Below are positions 53,688 through 64,000 of a stretch of DNA of 64,000 bases, in pieces. Both the position numbers and the translations under genes were made by a program. The notes under the pieces are model-generated. The model was not told the origin of the DNA. It did not search any database and was given only the letters and a program-made list of their open reading frames with translations. How positions within the stretch are numbered: position 1 is the first letter of the stretch; each line of letters starts with the position of its first letter. The stretch covers positions 1-64,000 of IMG/VR virus record IMGVR_UViG_3300029983_000007; one strand, written 5' to 3'.

Positions 53688-54884
53688 TCAAATATCTTTA
53701 TTTGGCGTACGAATATATCCATTATTTATATGATTTTTAAATAATTTTTCTAATAACACTTTTTTACGAGCTGCATTATATGCGCCCACACTATTTTTAG
53801 TAAATTCGCATATGTTGTCATATTTATTAGCTTCTTCTTGTAATGTTTCTTCTGTCCAATATCCAAGTTTAACTTGTTTTTCTGAATAACCTTGATTTTT
53901 GTGATTTTTAAATAATTCATCTAACATTTTTCTACTTTTGGCTGCAATATAAGCAGAACTATTTTCTCTAAATTCTTTTCTTGTTTTATATTTATTAGCT
54001 TCTTCTTGTAAAGATTTTATTGTCCATTTTAATCCACCTGATCCTAATGATCCAGCTTTGACTGAATTTATCATAATCCATTCATTATTTTCATAAACAT
54101 CAACCCAATATATTTCCTTTTTTATAGCGTCATTAGAATTTAAATTTTCTTCTAATAATTTATACTTTGGAAGAGGAATATTATTTATTTTACAAAAATT
54201 AATCAATGATTCTTTTTCACTAAATAAATGTTCTTTGTCTCGTCTATTTATATTGTTTGTTAATCCAACATAAGCATTATTATAATTTGTGAATTCATAA
54301 ACATATATAACATAACTATTTTCTTTCCATTCAATTATATTCCGACGTCCTTGATTGTCGTGATTTTTAAATAATTCATCTATTAATCTATTTTTATACG
54401 CAATTTTATAACCTGTGCTTTTTTTCTGAAATTCTCCTCTTGTTATATATTTATTAGCTTCTTCTTGTAATCTATCAAACGTCCAATAACCTTTTTTATT
54501 TACTTTAATATCAAATCCGTTATTAGAATGATTTTTGAATAATTCATCTATTAATTTTTTACTTAATGCTGCACTATATGCAGATTTGTTTTTACGAAAT
54601 TCTCCTCTTGTTTTATGTTTGTTTGCTTCTTCTTGAAGTTTTTCTCTATTCCAATGCCCAATAGTCATTTTACCTTCTTCGTAACCTTTATTTATGTGAT
54701 TTTTAAATAAATCATCAATTAATTTAATTTTAGATGCCGCTATATAAGCGGAGTTGCATTTTTCTCTAAATTCTTTTCGATTTTCGTATTTATCAGCTTC
54801 TTCTTGCAATTTGTCAATAGTCCAATAACCAATAGGTTTACGACTTTCATTTATAAAAATATTATAATTTTTACTTATTTTCAT
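53688..54884 (-). CDS. GIY-YIG homing endonuclease with five helical repeats
   Basis: VIYVYEF...YVGLTNN..RR..EH; 5x W..E.LQEEA.KY..R.EF...LFKNH. Confidence 0.8.
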   Translation of the reverse strand: MKISKNYNIFINESRKPIGYWTIDKLQEEADKYENRKEFREKCNSAYIAASKIKLIDDLFKNHINKGYEEGKMTIGHWNREKLQEEANKHKTRGEFRKNKSAYSAALSKKLIDELFKNHSNNGFDIKVNKKGYWTFDRLQEEANKYITRGEFQKKSTGYKIAYKNRLIDELFKNHDNQGRRNIIEWKENSYVIYVYEFTNYNNAYVGLTNNINRRDKEHLFSEKESLINFCKINNIPLPKYKLLEENLNSNDAIKKEIYWVDVYENNEWIMINSVKAGSLGSGGLKWTIKSLQEEANKYKTRKEFRENSSAYIAAKSRKMLDELFKNHKNQGYSEKQVKLGYWTEETLQEEANKYDNICEFTKNSVGAYNAARKKVLLEKLFKNHINNGYIRTPNKDI

Positions 54885-54947
54885 TGAATAATATATTTTT
54901 AACTATATATTTATAAAAAAATCAATGATAAATTATTGAATTTTTTG

Positions 54948-55027
54948 AACCTATGATGGGAGTCAAACCCACATTTACAACTTCAATTACAGTTACTTGA
55001 TTCGTAGTCAAGACTGGTTACATAGGC
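54948..55027 (-). ncRNA. D-armless tRNA-like RNA, anticodon ACG (Arg)
   Basis: Acceptor GCCTATG/CATAGGT; stem CTTGA/TCAAG with loop CTACGAA; T-arm GTGGG-TTTGACT-CCCAT; no D-arm. Confidence 0.7.
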
Positions 55028-55040
55028 ATATTATATCTAC

Positions 55041-55523
55041 TCATTTTTTTATAACAATATCTATATTTTCTAATTTTTCTTTTCTTGAGTATCTATATTT
55101 ATATTTATTAATACCTTCTATATCTGAATCTAAAAATTGTTCTATAAATTCTTCAGTTTGCATAGTAACATATTTTTTAGTACAATTTTCTTTATTGTCA
55201 CCATAATGACTAGTATCAAATCCTACTATCCAATAATTGTTGAATTTTTTATAATTTTCCTTTGTCACATCACCATCAATTTCTAAGCCTTCAGTCCAAT
55301 TTAAAAATGAATCAGAATCAAAAAATCGTCCATATGTTAATCCTCCATGTACACTTATGGTATTCATATCATCATATGAAACTTCATACAATGGATGATT
55401 AGTAGGTAATAATATATAACCATTCCCCCATCCAAATTCCATTATTAATGGATAATTTTGTATAGTAGATAAATGTTTAGTAAGATAATTCTCAACTATT
55501 AGTGTGTAAATTCCGTATTTCAT
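55041..55523 (-). CDS. Conserved phage protein (HGGLTY...GFD..H) with RKEKLENI tag
   Basis: WGNGY, VHGGLTY, WIVGFDTSHYGD. Confidence 0.65.
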   Translation of the reverse strand: MKYGIYTLIVENYLTKHLSTIQNYPLIMEFGWGNGYILLPTNHPLYEVSYDDMNTISVHGGLTYGRFFDSDSFLNWTEGLEIDGDVTKENYKKFNNYWIVGFDTSHYGDNKENCTKKYVTMQTEEFIEQFLDSDIEGINKYKYRYSRKEKLENIDIVIKK

Positions 55524-55543
55524 AATATTTTTTTATAATAAAA

Positions 55544-55574
55544 CAAATATACAAAAAAATTGTTATATATACAA
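55544..55574 (-). promoter_or_regulatory. Bacteroidota-type promoter
   Basis: Minus strand TTG-N20-TATATTTG. Confidence 0.6.
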
Positions 55575-55581
55575 CTTAAAA

Positions 55582-56106
55582 TTATATTTTTTCTTGAATA
55601 TTGTCAACATCTGTATCAACTATTTTCAAATCATCTTGTATGTCATCCACATGATCTGTTATATTGTCAACATCTGTGTCAACAGATTTTAAATTTTCTT
55701 GTATACCATCAATGTGATTTTTTATGTTGTCTACATCTGTATCAACATATTTTAATTCTACTTCTATATCATCAACATGATATTTTATATCATCTACATC
55801 AGTTCCTATGTGCTCAGTCATAACTTCTATTTTTTCAGATAACTCTGCTATCTTAGATATAATAGCATCAGTTCTACTTCCACTTATTTTAGCAATATAA
55901 CCTAAGACTGGTAAAGCAACTCCTTGAAAAAAAACAGAAACTATATATTGCATCCATGCAACTGTTCCTGATGGTTGACTAAAAAATAATGGAATTATAA
56001 CTAACAATGTTATTATCCAAAACATTGTCATACTAGATAATGAATCTGATAAAAAAATTGCAAATTTTTCTTGCGATGACTTTAATTTCTCAACTAATTT
56101 ATTCAT
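55582..56106 (-). CDS. DUF1003-like membrane protein with 21-aa C-terminal repeats
   Basis: Two TM helices, Q...LPV motif; repeats of DTDVDNI..H.D.IQ..LK.V; true start MNKLVEK at 56106. Confidence 0.6.
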   Translation of the reverse strand: MNKLVEKLKSSQEKFAIFLSDSLSSMTMFWIITLLVIIPLFFSQPSGTVAWMQYIVSVFFQGVALPVLGYIAKISGSRTDAIISKIAELSEKIEVMTEHIGTDVDDIKYHVDDIEVELKYVDTDVDNIKNHIDGIQENLKSVDTDVDNITDHVDDIQDDLKIVDTDVDNIQEKI

Positions 56107-56160
56107 ATATTTTTTATATTTATATATAAATAGTATAAATAATATTAATTTTTTTTTTTG

Positions 56161-56243
56161 TGGGACTAGTGGGGCTCGAACCCACAACCTCCGAAGAGAT
56201 CAGTTTTACAGACTGACATGACTACCTGTGTCATATTAATCCC
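56161..56243 (-). tRNA. tRNA-Tyr(GTA), long variable arm
   Basis: GGGATTA/TAGTCCC; TCAGT-CTGTAAA-ACTGA; TTCGAGC T-loop. Confidence 0.9.
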
Positions 56244-56252
56244 ATATTTTTG

Positions 56253-56377
56253 TGGTAGCAGATGGACTCGAACCACCAACTTCTGAGACATCGGCCCAGC
56301 ACTCTATCCTTCGCTCGTTTCAAATTATTTATTCTAGATTCATAATTATCCCCTTTGTGCTTTTGAGTTACACTACC
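56253..56377 (-). ncRNA. tRNA-like RNA with about 50-nt D-loop insertion, apparent anticodon GAT
   Basis: GGTAGTG/TGCTACC; D-stem ACTC/GAGT around a 60-nt loop; CTGGG-CCGATGT-CTCAG; GGTGG-TTCGAGT-CCATC. Confidence 0.65.
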
Positions 56378-56419
56378 TTTTTTTATTGTAATATTCTTTA
56401 TTTAATTTTTTATTGAGTG

Positions 56420-56498
56420 TACTGCCGAAGGGACTTGAACCCTCATACACCAATTACCTTGTTAATGACTGGATATAAGCCAGTGGGGATACGACAGT
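56420..56498 (-). ncRNA. D-armless tRNA-like RNA, anticodon TAT (Ile)
   Basis: ACTGTCG/CGGCAGT; ACTGG-CTTATAT-CCAGT; GAGGG-TTCAAGT-CCCTT. Confidence 0.7.
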
Positions 56499-56514
56499 GT
56501 ATTTATTTTTGTTG

Positions 56515-56591
56515 TTGGTGAAGTGGGACTTGAACCCACATGTGACCAATTAACCTTTCTACTACTTATCAGGCAGAGGGTATATTCACCA
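56515..56591 (-). ncRNA. D-armless tRNA-like RNA, anticodon GAT (Ile)
   Basis: TGGTGAA/TTCACCA; CTGC-CTGATAA-GTAG; GTGGG-TTCAAGT-CCCAC. Confidence 0.7.
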
Positions 56592-56602
56592 ATGTTATTT
56601 AG

Positions 56603-56676
56603 TAGTCTCGGTGAGACTTGAACTCACGATTTATTGCTTATCAGGCAATTGCTCTAACCAACTGAACTACAAGACT
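56603..56676 (-). tRNA. tRNA-Ile(GAT)
   Basis: Canonical cloverleaf; ATTGC-CTGATAA-GCAAT. Confidence 0.93.
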
Positions 56677-56716
56677 ATTTTAGTTTATTATTTTTTTATT
56701 GGTATGATACTATTTG

Positions 56717-56797
56717 AGCACATTGACAGACTCGAACTGTCGGTGTTTATATCTCGCTTTTGCAGAACGATGCCTTCGCCACTCAGACCAAATGTGC
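56717..56797 (-). tRNA. tRNA-Cys(GCA)
   Basis: GCACATT/AATGTGC; U73 discriminator; loop CTGCAAA; 12-nt variable region. Confidence 0.9.
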
Positions 56798-56806
56798 ATT
56801 TCTATT

Positions 56807-57682
56807 TTAAAAATTAATTTTTCTTCCTTTTGTCCAACCATTAAATATCCATTCATCTAATTCACATTTTTTAATTTTCTTGTTTTTATTGATATTTAAA
56901 TTATAAATCCAACAAGTATTAAATTGTGAATTTTTATTTCCTTTTTGTTGTATTGAATTTTTTTCTCCAATTTTACGTTTCGTTTCATCAGTAATTTTTC
57001 TGCCAGAAAAAATATGCTTTAATTCACCAGATAAATATCGAGGATCATTTGTTGATACGTTTAATGTATTATTTTTATTGTCTTTAACCGTAATAAATCC
57101 TTTCTTGTGAAATATTAATTCACCAGATAAATATCTTGGATCATCAATAGAAACTCTAATTTTTTCGTTGTTTTTATTTTTAACAACAACAAAACCTTTA
57201 CCAACACACTGAAATTCACCTGATAAATATCTTGGATCTTCTGAATTCACAGATAATGTATTATTATCTTTGTCTTTAACCATAATCAATCCTTTCATTA
57301 TACTTACCAATTCACCTGATAAATACCTTGGATCTGTTTTATGTACTGATAATGTATTGTTATCTTTATCTTTAACAGTAATCAAATTATATGAATTAAA
57401 TCCTCCTCCACCTAATATTATATTATAAGTATTACCATTTTTAATAAATTCATCATTTACCAATTCTTTTTCTTTTTCCAACATTTTTTCTTTATCATCA
57501 AAATTAAATAACACAATTTTTTCAAAATTTTCAACTCCAAATTCTTTTATAGCTTTTTTAATATTAGATCCAGAACCCATATATTTATCATGTATGTTTT
57601 CTGTAATATGAATACCAATATAAATTTTATTATTTAACTTATTTGTTATTTGATAAACTATATAATATTTTTTATTTTCCAT
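56807..57682 (-). CDS. GIY-YIG homing endonuclease (Seg-like) with internal repeats, inside the tRNA array
   Basis: YIVYQITN..N.KIYIGIH...Y.GSG; 4x V..DDPRYLSGE repeats; NUMOD3-like end. Confidence 0.85.
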   Translation of the reverse strand: MENKKYYIVYQITNKLNNKIYIGIHITENIHDKYMGSGSNIKKAIKEFGVENFEKIVLFNFDDKEKMLEKEKELVNDEFIKNGNTYNIILGGGGFNSYNLITVKDKDNNTLSVHKTDPRYLSGELVSIMKGLIMVKDKDNNTLSVNSEDPRYLSGEFQCVGKGFVVVKNKNNEKIRVSIDDPRYLSGELIFHKKGFITVKDNKNNTLNVSTNDPRYLSGELKHIFSGRKITDETKRKIGEKNSIQQKGNKNSQFNTCWIYNLNINKNKKIKKCELDEWIFNGWTKGRKINF

Positions 57683-57751
57683 AAGTCGAACTTTTTATCA
57701 CTATATATAAAAAGTTCGATATCAATTTTATTAATATTTATTTATTTTTAG

Positions 57752-57838
57752 TACCGTTAGGTGGAATCGAACCACCGCAATCTATAAGACTGAAAGGTTT
57801 ATGAGACCTCCGTAATAACCAACTCTACTCATAACGGT
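57752..57838 (-). tRNA. tRNA with CAT anticodon (elongator Met or Ile2), long variable arm
   Basis: ACCGTTA/TAACGGT; GAGGT-CTCATAA-ACCTT; variable stem AGTC/GATT. Confidence 0.8.
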
Positions 57839-57911
57839 ATATTTATGTTTAAATATATAGTTAATATCATACTAATAGTATGATATTGTTAAATATTTTA
57901 AACTATTTTTG

Positions 57912-57985
57912 CGGGAAAGTTGAGATTTGAACTCAAGACACTTTGCTTAACAGGCAAACGCTCTAACCAACTGAGCTACATTCCC
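57912..57985 (-). tRNA. tRNA-Asn(GTT)
   Basis: Canonical; TTTGC-CTGTTAA-GCAAA. Confidence 0.93.
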
Positions 57986-57990
57986 TTATG

Positions 57991-58078
57991 CGCACTGGGT
58001 AGGATTTGAACCTACGGTGGAGATTACTCTCACTGGATTAACAGTCCAGACTTTTCGACCAACTAAAGCAACCAATGC
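57991..58078 (-). tRNA. tRNA-Asn(GTT), long variable arm
   Basis: GCATTGG/CCAGTGC; CTGGA-CTGTTAA-TCCAG; variable stem GAG-TAAT-CTC. Confidence 0.88.
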
Positions 58079-58080
58079 AT

Positions 58081-58117
58081 ATAATAACTTAATAATAACT
58101 TAATAATAACTTAATAA
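58081..58117. repeat. 11-bp tandem repeat (3 copies) in a tRNA spacer
   Basis: ATAATAACTTA x3. Confidence 0.85.
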
Positions 58118-58119
58118 AG

Positions 58120-58194
58120 CGGACTATAACGGTTACGGTCCGTTAATTTTACTTGAGTGACAGTCAAGTTCTCCACCAAGGAGCCTAATAATCC
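58120..58194 (-). tRNA. tRNA-Asp(GTC) with non-canonical T-loop
   Basis: GGATTAT/ATAGTCC; CTTGA-CTGTCAC-TCAAG; AACGG-ACCGTAA-CCGTT. Confidence 0.8.
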
Positions 58195-58201
58195 ATTTTT
58201 G

Positions 58202-58286
58202 TACTGGTAACGGGGTTCGAACCCGTGAGGAAATTTCTTTCCACAACATTGAAAGTGTTGCGACCTAGCCACTAGTCCATACCAGC
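58202..58286 (-). tRNA. tRNA-Glu(TTC), long variable arm
   Basis: GCTGGTA/TACCAGT; CAACA-CTTTCAA-TGTTG; variable stem GGAAA-GAAA-TTTCC. Confidence 0.88.
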
Positions 58287-58296
58287 ATTTTATTAG

Positions 58297-58373
58297 CGGA
58301 TTATATCGGGCTCAAACCGACTTCCTCAACCGTGACAGGGTTGTATGCAAAGTATCACTCACACCTATAATCC
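58297..58373 (-). tRNA. tRNA-Asp(GTC)
   Basis: GGATTAT/ATAATCC; CAACC-CTGTCAC-GGTTG; TTTGAGC T-loop. Confidence 0.85.
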
Positions 58374-58382
58374 ATTTTTTTG

Positions 58383-58453
58383 TGGGATAGGAGGTAATCG
58401 AAACCTCGTAGTTATGATTTACAGTCATTCTAAGTAACCCTGACCTCTATCCC
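58383..58453 (-). tRNA. tRNA-Tyr(GTA), short variable arm
   Basis: GGGATAG/CTATCCC; ATGA-CTGTAAA-TCAT; GAGGT-TTCGATT-ACCTC. Confidence 0.82.
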
Positions 58454-58487
58454 ATTTATTCATTATCCAGTATTTCAAAGATCATTT

Positions 58488-58532
58488 AAAAACAAAAAAC
58501 TCAGTTCTTATTTTTAAGAACTGAGTTTTTTT
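58488..58532 (-). terminator. Attenuator terminator ahead of the tRNA array
   Basis: Transcript AAAAAAA-CTCAGTTCTT-AAAAAT-AAGAACTGAG-TTTTTTGTTTTT. Confidence 0.85.
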
Positions 58533-58557
58533 ATTATTCACATAATAATTTATATAC

Positions 58558-58689
58558 TTATCCAGTTCTTCCTACATTATTTTCATCATCATTAATATAA
58601 TCATTAATCATATCAATACATATCTCTTCCATATTGTAATTGATATTACAATTGCGATAAATGCTATATATGTTATTAATGTTATTCAT
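58558..58689 (-). CDS. Putative attenuator leader peptide (43 aa)
   Basis: MNNINNIYSIYRNCNINYNMEEICIDMINDYINDDENNVGRTG; last codons complementary to the terminator 5' arm. Confidence 0.75.
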   Translation of the reverse strand: MNNINNIYSIYRNCNINYNMEEICIDMINDYINDDENNVGRTG

Positions 58690-58718
58690 GATATTTACTT
58701 TTACTTTGTTTTTATTTG

Positions 58719-58789
58719 TTGCGGACGTCTGATTCAAACAGCGACTATGGGTTATGAGCCCATTGAGATATCATTTCTCCACCTCCGCG
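58719..58789 (-). tRNA. Initiator tRNA-fMet(CAT), copy 2
   Basis: C1:A72 mismatch; ATGGG-CTCATAA-CCCAT with three G-C pairs; irregular T-stem. Confidence 0.8.
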
Positions 58790-58805
58790 ATATTTTTTTT
58801 ATTTG

Positions 58806-58876
58806 TTGCGGACGTCTGATTCAAACAGCGACTATGGGTTATGAGCCCATTGAGATATCATTTCTCCACCTCCGCG
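58806..58876 (-). tRNA. Initiator tRNA-fMet(CAT), copy 1 (identical, 87-bp period)
   Basis: Exact duplicate of 58719..58789. Confidence 0.8.
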
Positions 58877-58883
58877 ATATATT

Positions 58884-59510
58884 TTAATTTTTTCTGTTTC
58901 TATGATACAATTTTAGTGATTCTGAAATCTTTATTTTAGTTTCATCTGAAATTTTACTTTTATTTACTGTTTTATATGAATCAGACATTTTTTTCTTACT
59001 TTCATCTGATACAAAATGATTTTTTAATTTATTAGATATTTTATTTCTTTCTTCTTCAGATTCAAATCTTTTTTTAGCTGAATCTGACAATTTCTTTCTT
59101 GTTTCTTCTGATACAATTCTACATTTTAAAGATTCTGAAATCTTTTTCTTCGATTCATCAGAAAAAATTTTACCTATTGATGATTCTTTTAATTTATTTT
59201 TAGTTTCATCACTATGTTTTTTACCTTTAAAATGTGGACCACCTTCTCCTCCAATTCCTATATTATAATTTCTTTTTGATTTTATAAAATCTTCTGTTAT
59301 AATTTCTTTTTCTTTTTTATTCATTTCTGATTCATTATCAAAAATAAACAAAATTTCTTTTTTGAAATTTTCCTTACCATGCAATTTAATTGCATTTTCT
59401 AAGGCTTTACCAGAACCATAATAAGAATCATTTGTATTTTCAGTTTGATGCTTTCCAATATAATACTTATCATTTAATATATTTGTTGTTTTATAAATTG
59501 TATAGTACAA
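58884..59510 (-). CDS. GIY-YIG homing endonuclease with NUMOD3 repeats
   Basis: YTIYKTTN..N.KYYIGKH...Y.GSG; repeated S.ET..K.S.S; TTG start. Confidence 0.85.
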   Translation of the reverse strand: MYYTIYKTTNILNDKYYIGKHQTENTNDSYYGSGKALENAIKLHGKENFKKEILFIFDNESEMNKKEKEIITEDFIKSKRNYNIGIGGEGGPHFKGKKHSDETKNKLKESSIGKIFSDESKKKISESLKCRIVSEETRKKLSDSAKKRFESEEERNKISNKLKNHFVSDESKKKMSDSYKTVNKSKISDETKIKISESLKLYHRNRKN

Positions 59511-59582
59511 AATTATTTCTTTTTTATGTATATATAAATATATAAAATCAGAAATTAACCTGTTACCACTATACTATATATT

Positions 59583-59816
59583 TTAATCTTTTTCTTTATC
59601 TATTTTCTTATAAAGTTTCTTAGCAATCTCTTTTGCTTTTGAATTCATTCCTTTTTCTGTTTTAGGAACTTCACTATAATCAATTTTGATTTTATCAGCA
59701 AACATTATAAATTTTTCAGTTCTATCAGATTTCTTTTTCAGTTCATCATAATTTCCTTGAATTCTATTTACTACTTCTGCTGATTCATCAATTTTATTTT
59801 CTTTAACTTTTTTCAT
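59583..59816 (-). CDS. Lys-rich small protein (77 aa) directly behind attenuator 1
   Basis: MKKVKENKIDE...KIDKEKD; ATG lies 3 nt after the terminator U-tract. Confidence 0.6.
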   Translation of the reverse strand: MKKVKENKIDESAEVVNRIQGNYDELKKKSDRTEKFIMFADKIKIDYSEVPKTEKGMNSKAKEIAKKLYKKIDKEKD

Positions 59817-59819
59817 AAC

Positions 59820-59853
59820 AAAAAATCCAGTCATTTTTTAATTGACTGGATTT
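59820..59853 (-). terminator. Attenuator terminator 1
   Basis: Transcript AAATCCAGTCA-ATTAAAAAA-TGACTGGATTTTTT. Confidence 0.85.
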
Positions 59854-59880
59854 ATATATTTATAGGCATAAGCCTTAAAT

Positions 59881-59970
59881 TTATTTCTCAGTCAATTGGG
59901 ATGTATCATCAATATTATTGATAATTTCGTTGTTACACATTTCCTCATTTATATATAAATTACGATACAT
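59881..59970 (-). CDS. Putative attenuator leader peptide (29 aa)
   Basis: MYRNLYINEEMCNNEIINNIDDTSQLTEK; AATTGACTG in the last codons pairs with the terminator 5' arm. Confidence 0.72.
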   Translation of the reverse strand: MYRNLYINEEMCNNEIINNIDDTSQLTEK

Positions 59971-60075
59971 CTTGTTTTGTTTTTTTATTATTATTTTTGT
60001 TGAAAGTTTAATATTTTATTCTTTGTTATATATTATAGAAAAAAAGTCATTTTTTTCTATTTTTAATTTGTAGTA

Positions 60076-60107
60076 CAAAAGTAATACAAAGTTTTCATTC
60101 TACCAAA
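60076..60107 (-). promoter_or_regulatory. Bacteroidota-type promoter feeding attenuator 1
   Basis: TTTGGTAGA...N20...TACTTTTG. Confidence 0.75.
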
Positions 60108-60174
60108 TGTTTTTCAATCTTTTTTATATATTATTGAAAAAATATCATTTTTTTCTACTTTTAATATGATAGTG

Positions 60175-60206
60175 CAAAATTACAATAAAGTTTTCATTCT
60201 ACCAAA
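60175..60206 (-). promoter_or_regulatory. Second tandem Bacteroidota-type promoter
   Basis: TTTGGTAGA...N20...TAATTTTG; shares a 21-nt repeat with the promoter at 60076. Confidence 0.7.
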
Positions 60207-60589
60207 TCTTTTGATTGTTTTTCTTCAATATGTTTTTTAAATAGTTTATTAAATAATTTATAAATATTACTGAATTGTATATCATTGTAGAAATTTGTTT
60301 GTTTTTCAATTTCTTCTTTAGATTTAGTTTTTAAATCTGTTGGACTTAATCCTGTAATTGATCACCTTTCATACTCACTATTCATGTGTTTTGAAAAGTT
60401 TTCATCTATTGTGGTTACTCCTGCTCTGGTTGAACCACCAAAATGATGGGCTTTTACTGTATCACCTTCATTGAACATAGTACCATAAAAAGGTCTTGCT
60501 ATTGTACCATCAGCATTGACATATAATCCTAAGAAATCTTTTCTTATTTTTACTATTTTAGACATAACCTTATTGTTGTATTGACTCAA
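60194..60589 (-). pseudogene. Gene with a single internal TGA at 60362-60364
   Basis: The ORF-track protein ends YER*, but the frame stays open for 55 more codons (SITGLSPTDLK...DLVE*). Confidence 0.5.
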
Positions 60590-60803
60590 TAACTATCGAA
60601 TTTTCATAACTTTCTAATTCTTCATAATATTCTTGTTCATCACATTGATTATCTTCACAATATTCTTCTTTTGATTCACCCATATATTCTTTTATGAATT
60701 CTGTTTTTGCAGTATTTGCATCTTTTGGTGTATCAAATATTCCTATGAATATATTATCTGACATTGTACCAGTACTTGTAACGTAATCTACTTTGTATTT
60801 CAT
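60570..60803 (-). CDS. Small acidic hypothetical protein
   Basis: ORF track; promoter-like site at 60826-60857. Confidence 0.55.
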   Translation of the reverse strand: MKYKVDYVTSTGTMSDNIFIGIFDTPKDANTAKTEFIKEYMGESKEEYCEDNQCDEQEYYEELESYENSIVIESIQQ

Positions 60804-60938
60804 ATTAAATTATTTTTAATTTGTGTAAAAATACAATAATTTTTTCATTTTACCAAATGTTTATCAACTTATTTAAAAAAATAACCTTTCTTTTCAATGA
60901 AGAAAAGAAAGGTTTATGTATTTCTATTTATTGTTTTT

Positions 60939-61118
60939 TTACATTGAAAGTTCTTTCTTTTTCTTTGTATAGAATGAGAAACCACCATATTCTTTATCAA
61001 TACCAGGAATTACCATGAAATTTTTAAGATTAACACTTTCTTTTACTGAATAATATTCTTCTTTTGTTAAAAAAAATACTTTTGTAGATTTTGCTGAGTT
61101 ACTTGAGTTGGTTGTCAT
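60939..61118 (-). CDS. Hypothetical protein (59 aa)
   Basis: Manual translation MTTNSSNSAKSTKVFFLTKEEYYSVKE...; behind the promoter at 61166-61197. Confidence 0.55.
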   Translation of the reverse strand: MTTNSSNSAKSTKVFFLTKEEYYSVKESVNLKNFMVIPGIDKEYGGFSFYTKKKKELSM

Positions 61119-61165
61119 AATGTTTAATTTAAATTGTTTAAATGATTGTTGTTTTAATTTCTACA

Positions 61166-61197
61166 CAAAGATACTTCTGTTTTGAATATCTACCAAA
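61166..61197 (-). promoter_or_regulatory. Bacteroidota-type promoter
   Basis: TTTGGTAGA...N20...TATCTTTG. Confidence 0.75.
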
Positions 61198-61317
61198 TAT
61201 TTTAGTGTTTTTTAATGATTTAGATATATTTTGACTTATATTTTATATTTTAGTAACATTATAAATAAAAAATCAGTTTTATAATATAAATATATACTAA
61301 AAAAAGATATTATAAAT

Positions 61318-61560
61318 ATGAAAAATATTAAAAATTTTGTAGATTATAAATCTATGAATGAAAAATGGAAAGATGATGTTAAAGTTAAGCACACTGGCGA
61401 ACATTCTGGTAAGACTATTGAAGAGTTAGAAAGTGAATTATCATCACTTAAGAAAAGAAGCAAAAAATATCAAGAATCAGGTAAAGATGTACCAAAGAGT
61501 ATCATTGATCAAGAGCAAGAAATAAATTTTGCAATTCGAGCAAAAAAACATTGGAAATAA
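61318..61560 (+). CDS. Small putative virion protein
   Basis: Starts MKNIKNFVDYKSMNE; AT-rich TATATA motif upstream. Confidence 0.6.
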   Translation: MKNIKNFVDYKSMNEKWKDDVKVKHTGEHSGKTIEELESELSSLKKRSKKYQESGKDVPKSIIDQEQEINFAIRAKKHWK

Positions 61561-61588
61561 AAAAAGCTTCTTAAAAAGAAGCTTTTTT
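61559..61588. terminator. Bidirectional intrinsic terminator
   Basis: AAAAAAGCTTCTT-aaa-AAGAAGCTTTTTT. Confidence 0.75.
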
Positions 61589-61589
61589 G

Positions 61590-62108
61590 TTAATGTTGAC
61601 TAACAGTTACATTTTTTAATTTGTTAAATAGTCCATCGTGTTCAAGAGAACTAAAATATGAGCTATCATTATCTGAATAACTGAAGCAATACATAACTCC
61701 ACTTTCCACATCTTTACCATCAATTACTTGAAGTTTTAATTTTCTTTCATTGAAGAATTCGTTAAGTGCTTTTTTACCATATCTATTCATTGCATCGTTG
61801 TAGGCATCCCATTTGTCTTGGTCATTCTCAATATGGTTAAAATCATTATAATCAGGAGCGCCTATTAAATAATCACTTTGACATATAATATTAGTTGCCT
61901 TTTCAGTATCATTCTTTTCTTGTTCGCAGATGTCTTTCCATACTGTTTCAGCTACTTGATCAACTGAATATATATCATCTCCATAATACAATTGAGTATC
62001 ATCGAATAACATTTTTTTAACATCTTCAGCGCATTTAGGTTCCATTGGAAAAATAACTACAAAGCTACTTGATGATGAATTACCAACAAATCCCGTTCTA
62101 ATTTTCAT
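61590..62108 (-). CDS. MKIRxGFVxNSSSSSF-family protein
   Basis: Starts MKIRTGFVGNSSSSSF. Confidence 0.7.
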   Translation of the reverse strand: MKIRTGFVGNSSSSSFVVIFPMEPKCAEDVKKMLFDDTQLYYGDDIYSVDQVAETVWKDICEQEKNDTEKATNIICQSDYLIGAPDYNDFNHIENDQDKWDAYNDAMNRYGKKALNEFFNERKLKLQVIDGKDVESGVMYCFSYSDNDSSYFSSLEHDGLFNKLKNVTVSQH

Positions 62109-62266
62109 ATTTTATCTTTTTTATCATTTAAATCTATTGTAATATCAGATTTTCTAAAAATTGCTTTAATTATTTATGTTATTATACCACCAGTAATAGA
62201 AATTAATGAAATACAACCTACAAATATCCAAAATCCTGATGTTACATATTTTAAAAATTATAACAT
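62105..62266 (-). pseudogene. Small membrane protein gene with in-frame TAA at codons 3 and 31
   Basis: ML*FLKYVTSGFWIFVGCISLISITGGIIT*IIKAIFRK...; final TGA overlaps the next ATG (ATGA). Confidence 0.55.
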
Positions 62267-62305
62267 ATAATTTTATTATTTTTTTTTTTTGCAAATTTAC
62301 TAAAA

Positions 62306-62989
62306 TTATTTGATAATACAAAAATTTATTGTCAAATAATTATTATGAATTTTTTTTATCTCACACAATTTATCTTTTCTTTTGTATACAGGATTACACA
62401 CTAGGCATATAAGACCGTGTTTTTTTGTATTCCACATCATCTGATAATCACCTTTTTGTTTGCATTTAGGACATGATTCGTTACTTTCTGAACCTATAAC
62501 TTGATAATCTAATGAATAATAATCATTATCAAAAGAATAAAATTCAGAGTCTCCATCAAGTAAACTGTTTATGCTATACCATCCATCGTCATTATCGTTA
62601 TATTTTTGTAGTATAATTTTAAGTTCTGATTTAGCATCTTCTGATAATTTAGTATTATATTTCCATAAATCCCAATCTTCATTATTACATGTTGAAATTA
62701 AATAGCAATCTGCAACTTTTTTTATATAAGTATCATAATTGCAACTTTGAAATGTTATTGCCTGATTCTCATCTAAATTTTGTAAAAAATTTAGATATTT
62801 ATCGTGCTCATTTTTTCGATATTCATCCTGTTTTTTATCTCCACCTCCATAATCTCCATAATCTCCATATTCATCATATTTTCTATTAATCATATATGTA
62901 GCAAGTTCACGTACACTTTTAAAATTCTTATCTGATATTATAAAACTACTTGATGATGAATTACTAACAAATCCAGTTCTTATTTTCAT
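62306..62989 (-). CDS. MKIRxGFVxNSSSSSF-family protein with zinc ribbon and RKDKL tag
   Basis: MKIRTGFVSNSSSSSF; CPKC...CLVC. Confidence 0.7.
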   Translation of the reverse strand: MKIRTGFVSNSSSSSFIISDKNFKSVRELATYMINRKYDEYGDYGDYGGGDKKQDEYRKNEHDKYLNFLQNLDENQAITFQSCNYDTYIKKVADCYLISTCNNEDWDLWKYNTKLSEDAKSELKIILQKYNDNDDGWYSINSLLDGDSEFYSFDNDYYSLDYQVIGSESNESCPKCKQKGDYQMMWNTKKHGLICLVCNPVYKRKDKLCEIKKIHNNYLTINFCIIK

Positions 62990-63008
62990 TTTCTATTATT
63001 TTCTATTA

Positions 63009-63311
63009 TTAACAATATGTCGTACCAGTTATCAATTCAACTTCACTAATATCAACATTTAATGTGTCTGCTACTAATTTAGATTTTTCTATTATATCTG
63101 ATATCGATGTTGCACTATCACTTAACTCTTCACTTCTTGATATTATATAACCAACAATATATTCGTAATTACTATTTTCAACATTAATTACTTCAATATT
63201 ATTGTCAAATCCTTGTTCAATTTCATCTGTAGTGCAATTTGCTCTTTTGATACCAATTACCACAAAGCTACTTGAACTTGAATTACTCACAAATCCTTTT
63301 CTTATTTTCAT
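63009..63311 (-). CDS. MKIRxGFVxNSSSSSF-family protein
   Basis: Starts MKIRKGFVSNSSSSSF. Confidence 0.7.
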   Translation of the reverse strand: MKIRKGFVSNSSSSSFVVIGIKRANCTTDEIEQGFDNNIEVINVENSNYEYIVGYIISRSEELSDSATSISDIIEKSKLVADTLNVDISEVELITGTTYC

Positions 63312-63324
63312 ATTTTCTTATTTT

Positions 63325-63786
63325 TTATCCATTTCTACCTGCGCCAAAATAAACTTCTGATTTATTTAAGTCTAACCCTGATTTTTCACTATAAAAAGCA
63401 TTATAAACTTTTTTGTCATTATTCTCAAAGAATGACATATCAATATCATAATCAATATCATCATAATCAGATGTCATAAAATCTGAATCACCTTCATTAT
63501 TGCATATATTAACAACTAAAAATAAATCTTCATCTTTACAATCTTTAGTATCTAACGAAGCATTTGTTTGAAATGACTCTACATAAATTTTATTATTGTT
63601 AAAATGTATATCATAATTACCGCTTTCTTTAATATTAGATAACGTTAATACTTTAACATAATAATCCAATTTAATATTATTATCTTTTGTGTATTGTGTA
63701 AATTCGTTGTAATCATTAATCTTGGCTATACCAACAATAAAACTACTTGATGATGAATTACTTACGAAACCATTTCTTATTTTCAT
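63325..63786 (-). CDS. MKIRxGFVxNSSSSSF-family protein
   Basis: Starts MKIRNGFVSNSSSSSF at 63786; ends GAGRNG. Confidence 0.7.
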   Translation of the reverse strand: MKIRNGFVSNSSSSSFIVGIAKINDYNEFTQYTKDNNIKLDYYVKVLTLSNIKESGNYDIHFNNNKIYVESFQTNASLDTKDCKDEDLFLVVNICNNEGDSDFMTSDYDDIDYDIDMSFFENNDKKVYNAFYSEKSGLDLNKSEVYFGAGRNG

Positions 63787-63799
63787 ATTCTTATTTTTT

Positions 63800-64000
63800 T
63801 TACAATAAATGTGGTCTTGCTTCAGCAATTCCAGCATTTGTTACTTGATACCATTTTGGATTGTATTCAGATAGATTGTTAGCTCCTCCATAAGATAATG
63901 CTGAACGAACTCCATAAATTAATCCTTCTATTACAAATCTTACTCCACCTTTGAATGGTATAGTTGTTGACTCTCCTTCTACATTTCTCTCAGCTTGACC
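63800..64000 (-). CDS. IMP dehydrogenase/GMP reductase family, 3' part only
   Basis: VEGESTTIPFKGGV...GVRSALSYGGA...VTNAGIAEARPH matches the GuaB/GuaC C-terminus. Confidence 0.85.
   Translation of the reverse strand, partial: GQAERNVEGESTTIPFKGGVRFVIEGLIYGVRSALSYGGANNLSEYNPKWYQVTNAGIAEARPHLL

Follow-up and report, generated by a model that had tools for sequence, protein, structure and literature searches.

Leader-peptide transcription attenuators have been characterized in amino-acid operons, such as trp, his, leu and pheA of E. coli, in which a short translated leader enriched in regulatory codons precedes a Rho-independent terminator whose 5' arm can alternatively pair with an upstream segment, so that the position of the ribosome chooses between the two folds. 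In the multivalent attenuators, such as the ilvGMEDA, ilvBN and thr leaders, a single leader mixes codons for 2-3 metabolically linked amino acids, and a shortage of any of these relieves termination. The pheST attenuator applies the same principle to a component of the translation machinery, with a Phe-rich leader controlling the phenylalanyl-tRNA synthetase operon in a feedback loop on the supply of charged tRNA. T-box riboswitches also report tRNA status through a terminator/anti-terminator switch and control translation-related genes, but bind uncharged tRNA directly, through a specifier codon and the T-box loop, without the involvement of a ribosome. Among phages, the tRNA gene cluster of T4 is invaded by a GIY-YIG homing endonuclease, SegB.

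Here we describe a locus of a giant, very AT-rich phage that is best interpreted as a leader-peptide attenuator placed in front of the phage's own tRNA genes. In comparison with the trp-type leaders, this element lacks the region-1/2 pause hairpin and consists of only three interacting strands plus a nested mini-hairpin; its leader is written in codons for eight amino acids rather than one, the putatively regulated genes are tRNAs and not enzymes, and the element is encoded by a phage. In contrast to the ilv and thr leaders, to which it is closest in logic, it lists the entire specificity set of a tRNA array, down to the Arg CGY codon family. Unlike pheST, which is a single-amino-acid synthetase control in a bacterial chromosome, it precedes tRNA genes. 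A search against Rfam at E <= 1 yielded only tRNAs and sub-threshold noise: there was no leader-family match at 59816..59970, where the only hit was a sub-threshold sRNA-family match on the opposite strand over the terminator, and no T-box match anywhere in 54000..64000, and the conserved open reading frame with codon-level constraint points to a ribosome-dependent mechanism. As in T4, a GIY-YIG endonuclease gene lies within the locus, and it aligns with T4 segB.

The analyzed window is a stretch of 64,000 nucleotides of the IMG/VR contig UViG_3300029983_000007, a 330-kb phage contig with 20-30% GC. The phage uses the standard genetic code: although an in-frame continuation after a TGA at 60362 raised the possibility of TGA recoding, the long ORFs contain no internal TGA and use TGG for Trp. 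All features discussed here are located on the minus strand:

60175..60206 (-), upstream copy of a Bacteroidota-type promoter motif (TTTG-N20-TAATTTTG)
60076..60107 (-), proximal copy of the Bacteroidota-type promoter motif (TTTG-N20-TACTTTTG)
60026..60059 (-), conserved palindromic 5' element (A-run, 4-nt centre, T-run, then TATAATATATAA), with a second copy at 60124..60157
59971..59992 (-), A-rich, Shine-Dalgarno-free start context of the leader (ending in AAAAAACAAAACAAG before the ATG)
59881..59970 (-), leader ORF 2, 29 codons plus TAA, encoding MYRNLYINEEMCNNEIINNIDDTSQLTEK
59905..59967 (-), putative sensor codons 2-22: Tyr, Arg(CGT), Asn, Ile, Glu, Met, Cys and Asp codons plus one Leu
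59889..59897 (-), segment 2, AATTGACTG, the 5' strand of the predicted anti-terminator, inside the last codons of the leader
59864..59875 (-), small 12-nt GC hairpin (AGGC-TTAT-GCCT) enclosed by the anti-terminator
59839..59853 (-), terminator 5' arm, of which positions 59848..59840 (CAGTCAATT) also form the 3' strand of the anti-terminator
59820..59833 (-), terminator 3' arm (TGACTGGA) and T6 run
59583..59816 (-), predicted first regulated gene, a 77-aa Lys/Glu-rich protein whose start codon lies 3 nt after the T run
58884..59510 (-), GIY-YIG/NUMOD3 homing endonuclease (SegB-like), a mobile insertion
58720..58875 (-), two identical initiator-like tRNA(CAT) genes (58875..58807 and 58788..58720)
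58494..58689 (-), leader 1 (43 codons, 58689..58558) and its terminator (58531..58494), the second attenuator in series
54948..58453 (-), tRNA array: Glu, Asp, Asn x2, Met/Ile2(CAT), Cys, Ile and Tyr, plus aberrant tRNA-like genes, interrupted by GIY-YIG and other non-tRNA ORFs

The arrangement noticed in the initial annotation, namely a 29-codon ORF dominated by a restricted residue set and carrying near its end a 9-nt complement of the following terminator arm, is real and far beyond chance. Of the first 22 residues of the ORF, 20 belong to the set N/I/Y/D/E/M/C, the exceptions being R3 and L5. Segment 2 is the exact complement of CAGTCAATT, inside the 5' arm of a hairpin with arms TCCAGTCA (59850..59843) and TGACTGGA (59833..59826), in which A3/T3 extensions lengthen the stem of 8 core pairs and a T6 run lies at 59825..59820. 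This predicted hairpin (-13.4 kcal/mol) was not listed by a consensus terminator scan because its loop is 9 nt and the scan allows at most 8. A complement of 9 nt or more to the arm arises in 0.15% of dinucleotide shuffles of the ORF, and in 0.035% if it is required to lie in the last 30 nt. Among all ATG ORFs of 15-70 codons on both strands of the window, this ORF and the 58689..58558 leader rank second and first, respectively, for enrichment in the above residue set, and the two leaders are likewise the top-scoring small ORFs in each of the four relatives scanned.

The region folds better than all 200 shuffles (z = -4.0), with the anti-terminator, in which the mini-hairpin is nested, as the minimum-energy structure and the terminator as the centroid. 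The nascent transcript cut before the 3' arm folds into the anti-terminator at -20.4 kcal/mol (z = -6.1, with 0 of 200 shuffles as good), and the same truncated fold gives the helix between segment 2 and the 5' arm in 20 of 20 relatives. Conversely, masking the stretch covered by a ribosome at the stop codon leaves the terminator in all 9 sequences tested. However, at equilibrium the full-length RNA prefers the terminator in 7 of the 9 sequences folded, and a stalled-ribosome mask did not by itself switch the full-length RNA to the anti-terminator in most relatives, so that the case for read-through rests on co-transcriptional order and kinetics. We found no conserved pairing of segment 2 with upstream leader sequence.

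A search with the downstream 77-aa protein, followed by a profile of its homologues, recovered about 20 distinct loci from viral and lake/bog metagenome contigs, including a Trout Bog hypolimnion assembly, in which this protein is 52-100% identical to that of the window; a further pattern scan of viral contigs added no new lineages, and a blastn search against 50,697 phage records found only the SegB-like endonuclease and no relative of the locus. In these relatives, the leader ORF, its composition, the complementarity of segment 2 to the terminator arm, the terminator and the serial arrangement with the second leader are conserved, contrary to what would have spoken against the initial annotation, which had named lack of conservation of the leader as grounds for rejection. 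The ORF is open in all 20 aligned relatives, 19 of which have 21-29 codons, whereas one contig-end sequence has only 14, and the A-rich context preceding the ATG is nearly invariant. Segment 2 is conserved as (A)TTGRCTGR at or just before the stop codon, which lies from 2 nt inside this segment to 5 nt after it. The GGC/GCC stem of the mini-hairpin is kept in 19 of 20 relatives, with variable loops and with the closing pair flipped in L025 and L036, and is followed by a CCAGTC/GACTGG terminator with a T6-8 run and by the start codon of the small protein, which lies 0-8 nt after the T run in the eight relatives checked. The order of leader 2, terminator, small ORF, tRNA(CAT), leader 1, terminator and tRNA array is conserved as well. 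Searches of Pfam, PHROGs, NCBIfam and a PDB profile search assigned the small protein to no family.

The alignment of the leader-terminator region (20 sequences, 170 columns) shows compensatory changes in both alternative helices. The anti-terminator pair 95-144 reads A-U in 15 sequences, G-C in 3 and G-U in 2, with no mismatch, whereas in the terminator column 144 is mismatched with column 158 in exactly those three sequences; the T-to-C change in the arm is therefore compensated in the leader and not in the 3' arm. In L025 and L036, a C-to-T change in the arm (column 140) is matched both in the leader (column 99) and in the 3' arm (column 162), and the terminator pair 139-163 shows three pair types (CG in 8, AU in 6 and UA in 6). 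Admittedly, independent compensatory events are few, about 2-3 per helix, and the shuffle control for the anti-terminator as a whole is not significant because five of the eight pairs never vary. Furthermore, TTGACTGG is conserved although it is read in two different frames (QLTG-stop or LIDW-stop), as Leu-Thr-Gly in most lineages and as Ile-Asp-Trp in one group of relatives (the L027 group), which indicates that the 3' end of the ORF is constrained as RNA.

Upstream of segment 2, in contrast, the ORF is constrained as codons: synonymous variants occur (CGT/CGC, TTA/CTA, GAG/GAA, AAC/AAT) and indels are multiples of three. The link between the composition of the leader and the downstream tRNA genes was only implied in the initial annotation. 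In the window, these genes are the two initiator-like CAT tRNAs (Rfam tRNA, 42.6 bits each, with a C1/A72 mismatch and a GGG/CCC anticodon stem), Glu, Asp, two Asn, a CAT elongator, Cys, Ile and Tyr, plus aberrant tRNA-like hits with GAU, UAU and ACG anticodons. In the relatives, the arrays contain up to 18 tRNA genes but, within the 6-10 kb flanks that were read in these 100-350 kb genomes, only Glu(TTC), Asp(GTC), Asn(GTT), Tyr(GTA), Cys(GCA), Ile(GAT/TAT), Met(CAT) and Arg(ACG/GCG/TCG), with one call unassigned. With the residue set defined independently by the tRNA genes (M, E, D, N, Y, C, I, R; 44% of phage protein residues), codons 2-23 of the window leader score 20/22 (P = 6.5e-6); only 10 of 125,970 possible eight-amino-acid sets cover those codons as well, and the tRNA set is among the best 4-10 of these sets. 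In the 14 full-length relatives, leader-2 cores have 13-20 of 14-22 residues in the tRNA set, the truncated relative L028 has 6 of 7, and leader-1 cores reach 36 of 36. Lys and Phe are absent from the pooled leader-2 cores although 26 and 13 were expected. Moreover, Arg in leader 2 is written CGT or CGC in 18 of 18 cases, against 12% in phage genes, which use AGA 77%, CGT 11% and CGC 1% of the time; the arrays carry only Arg tRNAs that read CGN and never one with a UCU anticodon.

Given these observations, we propose that the locus is a ribosome-mediated transcription attenuator, the first of two in series, that gates a phage operon consisting of a small protein, an initiator-like tRNA and, after the second attenuator, an array of elongator tRNAs; in the absence of transcript, ribosome or 3'-end data, we assign this reading a probability of about 0.7. 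Under this model, transcription starts at the tandem promoters and the 29-codon leader is translated while the polymerase proceeds. A ribosome that runs through to the stop codon, 5 nt after segment 2, would cover this segment and part of the mini-hairpin, leaving the 5' arm free to pair with the 3' arm, so that the hairpin plus U-tract forms and transcription ends at about 59820. A ribosome held up on the Asn, Ile, Tyr, Asp, Glu, Met, Cys or Arg(CGY) codons among codons 2-22 would leave segment 2 free to capture the 5' arm as soon as it emerges, with the small GC hairpin nested inside, and the polymerase would read on. In the window, the three non-sensor codons Thr-Ser-Gln separate the last sensor codon from segment 2 by 7 nt, so that a ribosome stalled there would presumably cover little of segment 2. 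Because no upstream region-1 partner or pause hairpin of the trp type was found, an untranslated leader, for example when initiator tRNA is short, would be expected to read through as well. Since the sensor codons are those decoded by the downstream tRNA genes, the circuit would be a negative feedback on decoding capacity, in which the phage probably makes more tRNA only when ribosomes run short of it. Stalling, the coupling of translation to transcription, the direction of regulation, a pause role for the small hairpin and an additional occlusion of the start region of the 77-aa gene by the terminator hairpin are all inferred. Some features sit less comfortably with the model: the terminator has only 8 core pairs, a 9-nt loop and a T6 run, a conserved Leu codon (TTA) at position 5 has no counterpart tRNA-Leu(UAA) in the arrays as read, and the leader core is almost invariant at the nucleotide level, which is more than a pure composition constraint predicts.

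Alternative interpretations appear considerably less likely. A leader of this kind can only sense aminoacyl-tRNA at the ribosome and cannot distinguish a lack of tRNA from a lack of amino acid, so that it could be a classical sensor of amino-acid starvation, as in biosynthetic operons, with the match to the tRNA array being secondary; multivalent leaders are indeed known for the ilv and thr operons. However, the production of tRNAs would not relieve amino-acid starvation, the Arg codon specifically matches the phage tRNA-Arg anticodons rather than the preferred AGA, and the same eight specificities recur in all arrays and both leaders, which makes this reading unlikely. It is also conceivable, although doubtful, that the ORF encodes a functional or arrest peptide, of the erm, cat or tnaC type, whose sequence rather than codon demand matters and which might sense a ligand or factor. 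In favor of this possibility, the core R-N-L-Y-I-E-M-C-N-E is almost invariant, it includes the unmatched Leu, and it is more conserved than the neighboring protein. Against it, leader 1 has the same composition in a different order, the variable half of leader 2 changes order and length but keeps its composition, and the codon choice for Arg tracks the tRNAs.

The proximity of the hairpin to the start codon of the 77-aa gene, together with the use of unstructured, A-rich initiation regions without Shine-Dalgarno sequences by the phage genes, would be compatible with mainly translational control in which leader translation opens or closes the initiation region and the T run is incidental. We regard this as improbable because the A-tract, stem and T6-8 run are conserved and match the other terminators of this phage, and because leader 1 has the same design but is followed by tRNA genes, which are not translated. 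Finally, at 24% GC, short open frames rich in Asn, Ile and Tyr are easily found, and the 9-nt match alone has a P of about 1e-3, but a chance micro-ORF beside a constitutive terminator is strongly disfavored by the conservation of the ORF, its composition and the complementarity in about 20 diverged relatives, with covariation and a frame-independent RNA constraint, and by the depletion of Lys, Phe and Leu codons, the commonest AT-rich codons.

Why phages carry tRNA genes is a long-standing question, with codon-usage compensation, independence from a degrading host pool and escape from tRNA-targeting defenses as the candidate answers. Here the phage itself appears to state which codons it finds limiting and to tie tRNA synthesis to that signal. 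In the literature we could search, which excluded most subscription journals, there was no report of a leader peptide or attenuator controlling phage tRNA genes or tRNA arrays. If confirmed, this would be, within that literature, the first case of leader-peptide attenuation controlling tRNA genes, the first such attenuator encoded by a phage and the most multivalent leader known, covering eight specificities chosen at the level of the codon family, as well as a compact, portable sensor of decoding capacity. More tentatively, the leaders might be codon checklists through which the phage monitors in real time whether the host still supplies the eight tRNA species on which it depends, responding to depletion or cleavage of host tRNAs, by host defense nucleases, phage-induced shut-off or the codon demand of a 24%-GC genome, by switching on replacements that include an initiator tRNA and non-canonical versions of ordinary tRNAs with long variable arms. 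Because the untranslated state is expected to be "on", the first attenuator would then also sense failure of initiation.

The two sites described in the initial annotation as host-type promoters are two copies of a 99-nt tandem repeat, each carrying a Bacteroidota-type TTTG-N20-TAnnTTTG motif and a conserved A-run/T-run palindrome, on which a sigma-70-like hit also lies. The motif TTTG-N18-21-TAnnTTTG occurs 13 times in the window against 4.7 expected, with 0 of 100 shuffles reaching 13, and the proximal motif aligns upstream of the leader in several relatives. The start context of the leader resembles that of the phage genes in the window, of which only 2 of 39 have a Shine-Dalgarno sequence and which have 55-70% A upstream. 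A protein scan of bacterial genomes found nothing, and a search with a DNA pattern found a single 1.8-kb contig binned into an uncultured Bacteroidetes MAG as the only bacterial-genome hit to the leader, which is weak evidence; a Bacteroidota host is therefore likely but not shown. The palindrome has two exact matches in the window, where none is expected, and is found in every relative whose upstream sequence was aligned. A pattern scan found one copy per locus, only upstream of leader 2, in 9 of the 10 relatives scanned, and never upstream of leader 1, which argues against a general phage promoter. A hairpin predicted by RNAalifold inside the leader coding region never varies and is split by insertions in two relatives (L010 and L050), so that it is neither supported nor excluded.

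The second attenuator shares the design of the first. Leader 1 has 36 of its first 38 residues in the set N/I/Y/D/E/M/C, and its tail AAGAACTG is complementary to its own terminator arm CAGTTCTT; in more distant relatives, leader 1 instead has GGACTGG against CCAGTCC; all three strands have changed together. Although the initial annotation considered the two attenuators to be independent, in most relatives both use the same GACTGG/CCAGTC core, the same YRN motif and the same TG-stop or DW-stop endings, suggesting that they are probably old, diverged paralogues rather than independent inventions. In the window, only about 30 nt separate the second initiator-like tRNA from the leader-1 start codon, and thus leader 1 is most likely read on transcripts that have passed the first attenuator, in agreement with the tiered control that the initial annotation had inferred. 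The GIY-YIG gene, which was included there in the regulated unit, is absent at this position in a relative (L003) whose small protein is 96% identical and in which the tRNA follows the small protein directly; it is a mobile insertion and not a conserved part of the unit.

Many of the array tRNAs for Glu, Asn, Met(CAT), Cys and Asp (58286-58202, 58078-57990, 57838-57751 and 56797-56716 in the window; 6781-8703 in L037, one of the relatives) have long variable arms, with total lengths of 82-90 nt, like class II tRNAs, and often sit beside a canonical 72-76 nt gene of the same anticodon. In bacteria, long arms are normal only for Leu, Ser and Tyr (plus Sec). In addition to these genes, the tRNA region of the window contains several weak or atypical tRNA matches:

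58453-58383, a weak tRNA-like hit (32.5 bits) immediately after the leader-1 terminator
56591-56515, 56498-56420 and 55027-54948, three marginal Rfam tRNA hits (29-31 bits) with GAU, UAU and ACG anticodons
56377-56253, a tRNA hit (39 bits) with a 57-nt insertion in the D-loop region

In the three marginal Rfam hits, a 4-5 nt linker replaces the D arm and the variable region is about 20 nt long; they may be either aberrant tRNAs or tRNA-derived elements. The hit with the D-loop insertion is of unresolved identity; relaxed ARAGORN instead calls it a Phe tRNA with an intron. The hit next to the leader-1 terminator is read by relaxed ARAGORN as Leu(TAG) with a poor acceptor and D arm. Between the leader-1 terminator and the first elongator tRNA, a conserved motif of the form CTTTGA(C/A)AT(A/G)TTGG is present both in the window (58478-58455) and, just after the leader-1 terminator, in the relatives L010, L011, L024, L027, L037 and L050.

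Three GIY-YIG-type homing endonuclease genes (59510-58884, 57682-56807 and 54884-53688) interrupt or flank the tRNA region. The first of these aligns with T4 segB, which also lies in a tRNA cluster. The initiator-like tRNA next to it is duplicated, and it differs in sequence from the tRNA at this position in L003, a relative whose small protein is 96% identical.

Upstream of leader 2, a palindromic element (A-run, 4 nt, T-run, then TATAATATATAA) is conserved in the relatives; a regular-expression scan detected one copy per locus in 9 of the 10 relatives scanned, and never upstream of leader 1. In the window, this element (60026-60059 and 60124-60157) is duplicated within a 99-nt tandem repeat. 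Farther upstream (60589-60199), the 75-aa ORF ends at TGA (60364-60362), but the same frame then continues for 55 protein-like codons with no ATG/GTG start (the only TTG lies three codons before the end), up to another TGA inside the first promoter repeat. This arrangement could represent stop-codon read-through, a decayed gene or a non-canonical start, whereas genome-wide TGA recoding is excluded.

Four tandem paralogous genes at 61590-63837 begin with MKIRxGFVxNSSSSSF (phrog_7397, unknown function). Two of the matches to the Bacteroidota promoter motif (62060-62090 and 63263-63293) fall inside the conserved 5′ coding region of these genes and so may be codon-driven. Moreover, a sub-threshold Rfam Phe_leader hit at 61557-61625 (35.8 bits; gathering score 55), which probably reflects terminator similarity only, overlaps an ordinary A-tract/stem/T-tract terminator at 61560-61588.
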